Shown piece after piece: positions 1 to 11,523 of a DNA stretch of 64,000 nt (position 1 is the stretch's first letter; the number at the start of each line of letters is the position of its first letter). Location: positions 496,001-560,000 of the forward strand of contig JBNJNM010000006.1 in the NCBI GenBank assembly GCA_052426225.1, given 5' to 3'. The stretch is from Zancudomyces culisetae HAW-14-8 (Eukaryota > Fungi > Kickxellomycota). A program made the position numbers and the translations under genes. Below the pieces are notes generated by a model. That model did not search any database, was not told the DNA's origin, and worked only from the letters and a program-made list of their open reading frames with translations.

Positions 1-722
1 AAGGTGCTCCATTTGTCAACGGTTCCCCCCAAAACACTTTGGTTCCAGGTGTCATTGAGTTATCCGCAAGCAAGAACTGCTTTGTAGGAGGTGATGATTT
101 CAAGACTGGACAAACCAAAATCAAGTCAGTTTTGACTGAATTTTTGGTCAACGCTGGAATTAAGCCTGTTGCTATTACCAGCTACAACCACTTGGGTAAC
201 AACGATGGCTACAACCTCTCTGCTCCTGCTCAATTCCGTTCTAAAGAAATCAGTAAGAGCAACGTAGTCGACGACATGGTCTCTGCCAACCACCTTCTCT
301 ATAAGAAGGGCGAGCACCCCGATCACACCATCGTCATCAAGTATGTTCCTTCCGTTGGTGACTCAAAGCGCGCTCTCGACGAATACGTCTCCGAGATCTT
401 CATGGGTGGTCTCAGCACCATTTCCATCTACAACACTTGTGAGGATTCTCTTCTTGCCTCTCCTCTCATCTTGGACTTGTTCATGGTCACTGAATTGATG
501 ACCCGTGTTGAATACCGTGTTGATTCAAGCGCCAACTGGGAACCATTCCATTCTGTTCTCTCTATCCTGTCCTACATGCTCAAGGCTCCTGTTGTTCCTC
601 CAAACACACCAGTAGTCAATGCTCTTTCCAAGCAAAGAGCTGCCATGGAAAACATCATGCGTGCATTCATTGGCTTGCCTCCAAACAACGATATGCTTCT
701 TGAACATGTAACTAAGCAATAA
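1..722 (+). CDS. INO1: Myo-inositol-1-phosphate synthase, 5'-truncated by window edge
   Basis: Frame open from position 3 ([12 protein letters not shown]). Contains MIPS motifs [30 protein letters not shown]. Confidence 0.97.
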
Positions 723-3286: not shown

Positions 3287-5939
3287 ATGACCTCCGAAAA
3301 AGAGTCCATCAGAAATTTTAGCATTGGCATCTTGGGTCATGTAGATTCAGGAAAAACCTCTCTAGGTACAAATCTTACTACCTTTGTTCTACAGCTACTT
3401 GATATACCTTTAGGACCACCATTCACTGTTGATAAGCTGTGTGGTGAGAATTGGTCTTGTTTAGATGCATTTTAAAACCAGTCTATTACAGTGCCAGATA
3501 TCTTTTATTTGCGAGATAGAATATGTACCGATCCAATACTCATAAAACACATATCAATACATTAGCAAAGGTACTGAGCACCAAAAGCTCCACTGCTGCC
3601 TTCGATAAAAGCCCACAAAGTCAGGATAGAGGTATTACTCTGGATGTTGGCTTTTCTTCATTTGAAATAGTTAGCGACGGTGATAAAAAAGGTTTGGTCT
3701 CATATTATTCTACTCAATTGTACGTATATTCGAAACCACCTCAAGTATACCGCCAAACTTTGTGCATATATTCTCTACTTATGTGTATATTTATTAGTCG
3801 AAATAACTATTGTTGATTGTCCTGGACATGCCTCGCTCGTACGAACTGTGATTGGAGGTTGGTTACTAGCTTCTCGTATTTTATAACCGTGCTACACACC
3901 CACACATACATAATATTTAGTTATTCATCTATTTATCCTTTCTTACGCTTCTTATCTTGTTTTTTTTTAGGTTCGCAAATAATAGATGCTGCAATATTGG
4001 TAATTGATATTAACAAGGGTATACAAACCCAGACCGCTGAGGTACGTTATTTCTAAGTACACACATTCTTTTTCCTGTTTAGTATCTTAGCATTGAGGAA
4101 TACTTTTTTTTTTGTTACTAGTGTATATTCACAATCCCACAGGTTTTTTATATATAATTTTAGTGTTTGGTGTTGGCAGAAATCACTGAAAGACCGCTTA
4201 TAATAGTTCTAAACAAGATTGATCTGCTCCCGCTCGACAAACGCGCGGATAGAATCAAAAAAGTGACGAAAAATCTTCAAAAAACATTAAAAGATGCAGG
4301 ATACTCGGACTGTGAGATTGTCCCAATATCGACCGTTGTAACAGAAAGTGGATTTTGGGGTAAAGACGAACTAGTGAATGCGATAGAAAAGTCATATAGA
4401 AAATCTTTATCAGTTGATAATGATAGAAAATCTCTGGATTCTAAAATGTGCTTAATGTCTTTTGATCATTGTTTTGCCCTGCGTGGACAGGGAACGGTAT
4501 TAACGGGAACAATGCTGCAAGGAAAACTCGCTGTTGGTGATGTAATAACACAACCTTATTAATTGCAGTAGCACCGTACGCTCACATAGCCGATTTAATA
4601 ATTATATTTGGTCTTTTTTCAACATAGGTTGTAGAAATCCTGCCCATAAAGCTGGAGCGAAAGGTGAAGTCAATTCAGCGATTTAAGGCGCCCGTGGATA
4701 GTATATCCTCAGGCGACAGGGCAGGAGTTTGTGTAACAAAGATAGATGCATCTGATCTCGAGCGTGGACTACTTGTGTCACCGCCCGGGGGTGGTGGCAC
4801 AGTGACATTGTCTTCTGGTTGTATAATAGAGATATCTCAAGTCAGGTTTTATAAGGGAGAAATCAGATCTCATTCAAATTTCCATATCAGCATTGGCTAT
4901 GAAACTACAGTGGGAAAAGTGACTTTATTCGGAGCTCCAAAATCCGCACCAAAACCAACTGCGGACGACTTTTTTAGATATGAGTTTGAGGCCATCGATG
5001 CTATATCTAGCACCAACCCCCAAAATATTAAGAAAGCTGGTCAGTACGACGATAAACCCCCAAAGTACACATCCGAATCTTACTACACATATGCAATGAT
5101 CGAATGGAAAACCGATATGTACATTCCCAACTCATCCCTAATCATTGGGTCCAAGTTGGACTCTGACCCAAGTAATTTTTATATATTTTTATATATTTTT
5201 TAATATTTTTTTACCTCACTGTATTTCATATGCAAGCAAATCGATAAAATGATATATAAACCTAATATTTGTAAAATAGGTCTTAATGTCTGTAGGTTGG
5301 CATTCTATGGTAGGGTTTTTAAGCCCATACACGGAAAACATAGTCCCGGGTTTATACAACAGGGTATCAGCTTGTTTACTGTTAAACATAAATCTGCAGA
5401 GATTTTTAGGGTGAGACTGCTGTGTTTTAAGTATTTTTTTACTATTAAATACTTGTATTCATTACATTTGCTTAATTCTATCACTTACCATCTTTTTTTC
5501 CACTTTTTTTGCCTAGGTCATTGACGATACCTTGTTGATTGCAAAAGGAAGTATAAACTCCACTAATATTCCATTTTATGACGGCTTTCGAGTCGATTTG
5601 ATTGAAGGTAACCAACAATCTCTGTACATATTGTTTAAAACTGGTTGAAATACAAAAACTTCAAAATATGCAAACTTTTTAATTTTATTAGTTTCTTCAG
5701 GAGAGGTTTTGTGTACAGGCACAATAAGTGGGTTGTTTGGAAAATCAGACAAATTTAGAGTCCAATTTCCCACATCAGCCAACCTCTCCTTGTACCTGGG
5801 CCAGTCAAAAAAGACTAAAGCACCTCAACAACAACAACAGAAACAAAAATCCCCTCAATGCATGCTATTGATAAAATACAGAAAATTCTTAAACTCAGCT
5901 TTGGCCCATAAAAAGATCGACCAAAAGTTCACTTCTTAG
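3287..5939 (+). CDS. EEFSEC: Selenocysteine-specific translation elongation factor eEFSec (9 exons)
   Basis: Exons 3287-3365, 3566-3691, 3798-3857, 3971-4041, 4164-4541, 4628-5171, 5280-5410, 5517-5607, 5692-5939, all GT-AG and in frame. Motifs GHVDSGKTSL, STAAFDKSPQSQDRGITLDVGFS, DCPGHASLVRTVIGGSQIID, GIQTQTAECL, NKID, DHCFALRGQGTV, KVKSIQ, GDRAG, IGSKLD, CRLAFYG, FGKSDKF. Confidence 0.95.
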
Positions 5940-6361: not shown

Positions 6362-6844
6362 TTAGCCCTTCATCTTCATAACTGTTTGTACGACTGACAT
6401 CATCATATCCTTTTGACCACCAGAACCGGCGCCACCACTCTTTCCAAGAAGAGCCATTCCCTCCTTAATAGCCATACTAATAATACTTTCAATTCCTTTT
6501 CCTCCACCTCCCCCACCAAACTTGTTCATGATTTCATAGGCAGCTGCCATACCCATCATTTTGTTTGTCATATCCTGTAACCCACCACCTTGCTTGTATG
6601 CCATGTCATGTGCCTGTTGGATTTCTGAGTGCGATGGTTCTCCCCCAGACATAGATCCAGCCATGCTCATCATCTTTTGAATCGCAGCCTTCTCGATACC
6701 ACCACCACCTCCTCCTCCTCCTCCACTCATCAATCCTGATGCTATTGCGCCAAAGTCTATTCCTCCAGAGTGTTGCTGTTGATCTCCCTCTTTACCCTGG
6801 TTAAGTGCTCCTTCTGCAAGCTTTGCGAGATTTGAAAAATCCAT
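6362..6844 (-). CDS. Gly/Met-rich small protein with fungal helical domain (AH..AY...MG.AAA motif; DUF7721-like, tentative)
   Basis: 160-aa intronless ORF with coding-like composition. Core EIQQAHDMAY...MMGMAAAYEIMNKF...IISMAIKEG. Confidence 0.8.
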   Translation of the reverse strand: MDFSNLAKLAEGALNQGKEGDQQQHSGGIDFGAIASGLMSGGGGGGGGGIEKAAIQKMMSMAGSMSGGEPSHSEIQQAHDMAYKQGGGLQDMTNKMMGMAAAYEIMNKFGGGGGGKGIESIISMAIKEGMALLGKSGGAGSGGQKDMMMSVVQTVMKMKG

Positions 6845-9455: not shown

Positions 9456-11523
9456 CTAATAGTTTTCGGATGATTGAGAAACGATGCCCTTAACCGTATT
9501 TAATGCAGAGGACGAGATGGCTTCAAGTTTACAATGTCCACCCTGGCTTGTAAATCTCTTGTGGATGCTTGTAGCTTCGTTAATTACGGAAGCCACTACC
9601 AATTCATCTGAAACTCTTCCTCTTGAAACATCTTGCATTTCACCAAGAACTTTTACAGCAACAGCTTGACCCATGTACTCTGGTGAAAAGCCTGTCAGAT
9701 CATTCGTCCGCTACGTTTGTTTACAAGGATTAGAGTTTGGCGTATAAAGATAAAGCTGTACACACAAATATGAGAACAACATAAAGATAAATGTACTTAC
9801 ATAAACGCGATTGTATGCCTCATTCGCCTCGTTGTAATCCACCGCTGTCGCAAAGCTATCGAGATCTCGTTTGGAACCACCACCCATTAGCCCTCCAAGA
9901 AGCTATTTTTTTTGTGTACTCGATGTAGTTAAAATGTTAATATACAAAAAAAAAGACCGAGAAAAAGAACTTACACTTGAAATCATATCACCCCCACCTC
10001 CGCCAGAACTTCCACCACTTGGTTTACCACCACCAAATAATGAAGCTGCCATGCCTAACATTTGCATGGGGTTACTTCCACCTCCACCTCCACCTCCACC
10101 CCCGCTGCTTCCACTTGAAGTTCCTCCTAGCATACCCAAGATCTTTCCTATGTCAAACCCAGAAGAGCCCGAGCTGCCACCCCCACCTCCACCTCCTGAA
10201 GCCATTCCACCAAGAAGTGGTGTTAGTCCAGCTGCCAAACCAGCAAGCGACCCAAGACTCAACCCTCCAGGCAGCGACATTCCACCACCCCCACCACCAC
10301 CGCTGCTACCACCATGGTTTCCACCGCCCCCTGAGCCAGAGTTCGACTGGGATGGTTGAGGCTGTGATCCACTGCTGCTTCCGCCATAGTATGACGAGGG
10401 TTTCGGACCTCCACTCTGTAAAGGAGGAGGAGTGCTTTGGGAACCTCCTCCATAGCCACCTTGTGAGCCTTGGGGTCTTGGGCCACCACCGTATCCCCCT
10501 GGAGGCCCTTGTGGTCGCGGGCCTGGACCTCCTCCGTACCCACCTTGAGGGCCTTGAGGTCCTGGACCTCCTCCGTATCCCCCTGGAGGGCCTTGAGGTC
10601 GTGGACCACCCCCATATCCCCCTTGTGGTCCTGGGCTTGGGCTATGATTATTTCCATATCCTCCTTGAGGTCCTTGAGGTCCTGGACTACCACCGTATCC
10701 CCCTGGAGGGCCTTGTGGTCGCGGGCCTGGACCTCCTCCATATCCTCCTTGAGGGCCTTGAGGTCCTGGACCACCACCGTATCCCCCTGGAGGGCCTTGA
10801 GGTCGTGGACCACCCCCATATCCCCCTTGTGGTCCTGGGCTTGGGCTATGATTACTTCCATATCCTCCTTGTGGGCCCTGTGGTCGCGGACCTGAACCTC
10901 CTCCGTATCCTCCTTGAGGTCCTGGACCACCACCATACCCTCCTGGAATACCTTGGTATGGCGAGGATTCACCGTATGCGCCTAGTGATGCCTGAGACGC
11001 AGGAGCCCTTTCATAACCTCCTGAAAGACCATTATCTTCGTATTTTTTTGAGACACTTGGAAAGCCCACACCACCTTCTTGACCAGATTGTGAGGAACGC
11101 TGAGAAATCGAACTGTCCTCCATTTCGAACTGATTTTGTATTCCTCTATGGTGGCTGTGATTTCTGGGGAAATGCGGTGGTCGTTGTTCATGCCTATTAT
11201 TACTTCCGTACTCGGATTCATCTTGATATGTGTTGTCGGCTTGTTCCAAACCACGGGTGTTACTATTACTCCCAGAATTGTAAGCATTGCTTCCATCTTG
11301 ATCAAAAACTTCACCACCATAACTGGGATGAGGCATATAAGGACCCGAATTGTAATTGTTCGAGTACTGGCCCCCGTTTTCCCAACCTAAACGTATGAGT
11401 ATTACATAGGATTTCTAAAACTATCCAGCTATTACACCAAGTCGCTCTAAAAAGAGGGGGAAAATAGTGAAAGATGCTTTAAATTTTGTGTTTAACATTA
11501 CCTCTGTTATTGTCGTACGACAT
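9456..11523 (-). CDS. Large G/P/Q/Y-repeat, Gly-rich protein (~600 aa, 4 exons) with C-terminal helical domain related to the 6362-6844 protein
   Basis: Exons 11523-11502 (MSYDNNR), 11386-9975, 9902-9801, 9710-9456. Donors gtaatg/gtaagt/gtaagt and TAG acceptors keep the frame. Confidence 0.85.
10460..10945 (-). repeat. Coding tandem repeat (GPQGPQGGYGGGPGPRPQG-type units) with 204-bp higher-order period
   Basis: ccttgtggtcctgggcttgggctatgatta occurs at 10621 and 10825 (204 bp = 68 aa, NHSPSPG to NHSPSPG). Confidence 0.95.

Follow-up and report, generated by a model that had tools for sequence, protein, structure and literature searches.

[quoted passage not shown] Z. culisetae is one of the five Sec-utilising fungi described, with SPS and SelenoH as its selenoproteins, and the EFsec proteins of fungi were found to form two clusters, vertical inheritance being the conclusion reached (10.1101/314781). 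In the older Z. culisetae assembly all of the Sec machinery except SecS was present, SecS has since been recovered, PSTK and SBP2 are reported for the species, and eEFsec is listed in both the genome and the transcriptome in Supplementary File 2 (Yang and Wang 2025, PMC12611240). Both the eEFSec and the Sec trait of Z. culisetae are already known (Mariotti 2018/2019 and, for this very assembly, Yang and Wang 2025), and an earlier note on this DNA, when counting Harpellales gut fungi among the cases of fungal Sec machinery, was referring to a published case (10.1101/314781, PMC12611240). What is modestly novel here is a complete nine-exon, 575-aa model that corrects a public annotation in which the gene is split.

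Within the window (the whole 64-kb stretch of DNA that was analysed), the eEFSec gene model comprises nine exons between positions 3287 and 5939 of the forward strand (Table 1). The predicted introns (n = 8) are 84-200 nt long with a GC fraction of 0.17-0.34 and are all of the GT-AG type, the exon phases agree at every predicted junction, the exons hold zero internal stops, and the CDS of 1728 nt amounts to 575 aa and a TAG, so that the nine exons do splice in silico without a frameshift or stop, as the earlier note had claimed. At two of the predicted junctions there are in-frame alternatives (donor 3680 vs 3692 and acceptor 5692 vs 5701), with the frame intact either way; donor 3692 is favoured by the exon length in Smittium angustum, and acceptor 5692 is the one found in the GenBank model. 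Used as a query against the whole genome, exon 5 indicates a single-copy gene. The same note had pointed out that the open reading frame track fragments the gene and that automatic annotation might miss it, and both points hold: the ORF list of the window shows it as fragments only, and the older GenBank annotation (LSSK01001139.1, L015:4842-7503) has two genes in its place, of 123 and 295 aa, and lacks exons 4, 7 and 8.

Table 1. Exons of the predicted eEFSec gene (window positions) and the other Sec-pathway genes, candidates and targets (positions preceded by their contig).
Feature	Position	Strand	Content and evidence
eEFSec exon 1	3287..3365	+	Start codon, P-loop GHVDSGKT; profile 3-24, E 2e-10
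eEFSec exon 2	3566..3691	+	Switch 1, with the counterparts of human T48 and F53 (the latter in the Sec pocket); human eEFSec E 2e-9
eEFSec exon 3	3798..3857	+	Switch 2, DCPGH (human D92/H96); profile E 2.6e-11
eEFSec exon 4	3971..4041	+	G-domain; in neither GenBank model of the older assembly; profile E 3e-11
eEFSec exon 5	4164..4541	+	Guanine-binding motif NKID; beginning of domain 2, DHCF = Sec-pocket D229/H230; human eEFSec E 1e-19
eEFSec exon 6	4628..5171	+	Remaining domain 2 (GDR = R285), domain 3 (PF21208 E 7e-21), hinge Glu; human eEFSec E 1e-21
eEFSec exon 7	5280..5410	+	End of domain 3 (CRLAFYG), linker; left out of OMH80588.1; profile E 1e-6
eEFSec exon 8	5517..5607	+	Start of domain 4, divergent; left out of OMH80588.1; collinear with Smittium proteins
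eEFSec exon 9	5692..5939	+	PF21131 (domain 4) including a loop rich in Lys/Gln; KYRKF in the C-terminal part; stop codon TAG
tRNA-Sec	C12:2376020-2376107		RF01852 57.9 bits, cut-off 47; UCA anticodon, 9-bp acceptor, 4-bp T stem (9/4 fold)
SecS	C14:532619-534278		TIGR03531, one exon passes cut-off; 254.8 bits
SPS	C21 ~462080-463540	-	TGA at 463451-463453, context KG-TGA-GCK
SelenoH	C11, TGA 3954438-3954440		EHCTR-TGA-RVF, then KPR, intron, GPPRKLKFPE
PSTK-like 439-aa ORF	C21:3237127-3238446		TIGR03575 E 1.6e-8, far below cut-off; KTI12 is the alternative identity
SBP2 candidate	C11:4040730-4042407		L7Ae-like part: sole PDB match SBP2, weak, E 0.058

Judged by its sequence, the locus encodes eEFSec. 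With the model searched exon by exon and not as a joined protein, exons 1-7 and exon 9 match a profile built from 47 full-length eEFSec homologues collinearly (E 2e-6 to 5e-52), and the frames of the introns gave zero matches to it. Exon 8 by itself scored insignificantly against the wide eEFSec profile, and in three Smittium proteins it aligns gap-free between the matches of its neighbours, exons 7 and 9. The 75.5 bits of exon 6 against PF21208, the model of eukaryotic SelB domain 3, stand well over the cut-off of 27; exon 9 alone reaches 26.6 bits against a cut-off of 27 for PF21131 (eEFSec domain 4, E 7e-6, second half of the model only), matches the eEFSec profile at E 1.4e-6 and also resembles domain 4 of Smittium. 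Among the PDB entries, human eEFSec is the best match of exons 2, 5 and 6, far above archaeal SelB, EF1A, HBS1 and EF-Tu in the best-hit ranking, and exons 7 and 9, searched singly, gave no PDB match. The claimed full four-domain architecture is recovered in the form of the GTPase domain, the pocket, the PF21208 domain 3 and the PF21131 domain 4, and the proposed comparison with SelB, EF1A and HBS1 puts the protein nearest to human eEFSec by that ranking.

The GTPase motifs GHVDSGKT, RGITLD, DCPGH and NKID are all present (exons 1, 2, 3 and 5). The sections of PMC5059743 drawn upon here give F53, D229, H230 and R285 as the Sec pocket of eEFSec, and T48, D92 and H96 as required for read-through; in the alignment, each of these human residues has an identical counterpart in Z. 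culisetae (human eEFSec numbering is used, from which the PDB residue numbering is offset by 20). Of the Sec-pocket motifs that had been proposed for this locus, DHCF and GDR do carry pocket residues (D229/H230 and R285), whereas KS.Q, found as KSIQ in exon 6, is absent from the pocket residues named in those sections of PMC5059743. The CRLAF.G motif, also claimed, is there as CRLAFYG.

The protein OMH80588.1 (UniRef A0A1R1PI12, GCA_001969505.1), named Selenocysteine-specific elongation factor of Zancudomyces culisetae and 99% identical to exon 6, represents the same gene with the same neighbours, and over 8.9 kb from its start the window shares 98.7% nt identity with LSSK01001139.1, the older-assembly contig. 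Fifteen exonic differences separate the eEFSec genes of the two strains, the splice dinucleotides are kept at 16 of 16 positions, and the indels fall within introns, with none in exons. The orthologues of Smittium angustum, S. simulii and S. culicis are more distant (~45% identity in exons 5-6), and the one from S. angustum, PWA01834.1, has introns at all eight positions and an extra one inside the exon 6 region, a likeness that speaks for conservation and is not a proof of splicing, as the S. angustum gene structure is itself a predicted annotation. Upstream of eEFSec lie the genes for inositol-1-phosphate synthase (window 1-722, +) and a cyclophilin-TPR protein (1198-2352, +), whose order and orientation are unchanged in S. 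angustum. Two Gly-rich low-complexity ORFs are also seen in the window, at 9903-11336 (-) and 6362-6844 (-); the former has tandem Gly/Pro/Gln repeats and a Gly/Met-rich C-terminal style similar to that of the latter, and the two are possibly related structural proteins.

Trees of exons 5 and 6, calculated for 26 named eEFSec proteins (eEFSec rows only, with neither an outgroup nor dipteran sequences), place Z. culisetae eEFSec in a clade with the three Smittium species (support 96/90 and 100/99), apart from insects, and cover the eEFSec part of the phylogeny that the earlier note had called for. The branches are long, and a single branch separates all of the fungi from the insects only in the exon 5 tree. 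Taken as a whole, the gene is almost certainly an intact, single and vertically inherited eEFSec of Zancudomyces culisetae (Harpellales), presumably acting as a part of a Sec decoding system.

As far as the rest of the genome tells, this eEFSec is not an orphan: predicted tRNA-Sec, SecS, SPS and SelenoH genes are present, plus PSTK-like and SBP2 candidates, and the Sec genes are dispersed over contigs C6, C11, C12, C14 and C21 without forming a cluster. The tRNA-Sec, SecS and SPS that had been proposed as search targets were all located, and the selenoproteins that had been expected elsewhere in the genome are represented by two genes, SPS and SelenoH, each with an in-frame TGA at the Sec position. 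For PSTK and SBP2 weakly matching candidates were located, with a TIGR03575 score far below the cut-off for the former and a match at E 0.058 for the latter. The idea that some UGA codons are decoded as Sec is supported by the predicted machinery genes and the two TGA-containing targets. ARAGORN reported no tRNA within the 64-kb window. The tRNA-Sec gene is preceded at ~30 nt by a TATA-like TATAAA (L002:1461-1475) and followed directly by a T-run terminator.

Genome searches with PF10262 and TIGR02174 missed SelenoH, which was instead recovered by a codon pattern, the other 8 matches of which are chance ones; with a control count of 14, the evidence lies in the flanking protein and not in the pattern per se. 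We take EHCTR-U-RVF, KPR and GPPRKLKFPE to be motifs of SelenoH. A PF01248 search of the genome returned Snu13, S12, L30, Nhp2 and L7a only, and no SBP2; the SBP2 candidate stems from a codon pattern with 78 matches, whose context was examined at 54 loci. Many dispersed ORFs resembling LTR-retrotransposon integrase regions (HxxxH...CxxC) came up in the same pattern search (L034, L035, L037, L045 and others). Some gene copies are paired at equal or near-equal scores (C19:125689 / C21:2454830, C19:148983 / C21:2477891, C6:2160566 / C12:691635 and C7:264734 / C7:321424), the pairs comprising S12, two translational GTPases and Nhp2; the assembly would seem to contain segmental duplications or else redundant haplotigs.

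No RF00031 (SECIS) match exceeded the cut-off genome-wide, near SPS and SelenoH included; the best one (E 0.5) was rejected as chance, being situated inside a long ORF resembling acetyl-CoA carboxylase. An imperfect hairpin with AUGA, AAAA and a 3' GA is found ~330 nt 3' of the SelenoH stop (C11:3955096-3955152, +; L027:2174-2230); its outer helix is good, its helix II is poor, and its z of -2.1, obtained for a hairpin picked after a scan, is weak, making it a possible non-canonical SECIS. Significant shared sequence was absent between the 3' regions of SPS and SelenoH. Such a SECIS gap in fungi has been noted before, elements having been found for 5 of 16 fungal selenoprotein genes and being undetectable in the other 11 (10.1101/314781). 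Harpellales might use a non-canonical SECIS, with a diverged eEFSec domain 4 that co-evolved with a diverged SBP2, and the failure to find a canonical SECIS, together with the divergence of both domain 4 and SBP2, would fit such a mechanistic variant, yet general fast evolution accounts for the same facts equally well, and we regard the variant as rather unlikely.

The same lack of a detectable canonical SECIS, along with the long branches in the exon trees and the weak PSTK and SBP2 scores, is what one would cite for the gene being an intact-looking relic, in which case the Sec pathway would be decaying, eEFSec would be unused, and the TGA codons of SPS and SelenoH would be stops. This is very improbable. 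The pocket and switch residues of eEFSec are all retained, the differences between the strains are 11 synonymous vs 4 non-synonymous with no exon indels, six machinery genes, PSTK and SBP2 among them as candidates, and two targets have been kept, translation would end in the first coding exon of SPS if its TGA were a stop, transcripts are reported (PMC12611240), and SECIS elements escape detection in most fungal selenoprotein genes as well (10.1101/314781).

It could also be asked whether the gene was acquired horizontally from the insect host, or whether host DNA has contaminated the assembly, given that a mosquito-derived polyubiquitin gene is reported for Z. culisetae (PMC12611240) and that some insect proteins rank high among the search matches. 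We consider such an origin extremely improbable, as both exon trees place the gene with Smittium and not with insects, S. angustum has the same neighbour genes and the eight common intron positions, the gene is found in the second strain too, and the published trees favour vertical descent (10.1101/314781); fungal monophyly in the exon 5 tree only, with long branches, does leave a little room, strictly speaking, for an ancient acquisition by the ancestor of Harpellales. As to what the gene is, weak matches of exon 5 to the models of EF-Tu, EF1A and eIF2-gamma are all that would point to some other translational GTPase (EF1A, HBS1/eRF3, EF-Tu or eIF2-gamma), or to a contaminating bacterial SelB, whereas PF21208 and PF21131 are eEFSec-type domains, EF1A and EF-Tu are matched at E 1e-4 to 1e-5 vs 1e-19 to 1e-21 for human eEFSec, and 17 further EF-Tu domain-2 matches sit elsewhere in the genome; a bacterial SelB is additionally contradicted by the eight predicted spliceosomal introns and by a pocket with Phe/His and not Tyr/Arg. 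An identity of this kind is refuted by the domain content, and its probability is vanishingly small.

If the vertically inherited eEFSec works by analogy with the established eukaryotic pathway, tRNA-Sec would be charged with serine and phosphorylated by PSTK, and SecS would convert it with selenophosphate from SPS; eEFSec-GTP would bind Sec-tRNA-Sec via its domain 1/2 pocket and, with SBP2 on a 3'-UTR SECIS, would deliver it to the in-frame UGA of the SPS and SelenoH mRNAs; GTP hydrolysis would then shift domain 4 and the tRNA would be released, while UGA codons elsewhere would stay stops. Being a culturable mosquito-gut fungus, Z. culisetae suits the testing of both the poorly defined fungal SECIS signal and selenium incorporation.

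Compared with human eEFSec, it is domain 4 of the Z. culisetae protein that has strongly diverged. The earlier note had placed IKYRKFL (exon 9) at the position of vertebrate KRYVF: the counterpart of KRYVF is indeed there, and the residues that the profile alignment puts against its KKYLF consensus are RKFLN. The Lys/Gln-rich loop presumably corresponds to the one carrying KKRAR in the human protein, and the hinge Glu and a basic residue at K582 are alike in both. The remainder of the likeness to human eEFSec (PDB 5IZK, 7ZJW; PMC5059743) extends over the four domains, the P-loop, T48, D92/H96, NKxD and the F53/D229/H230/R285 pocket.
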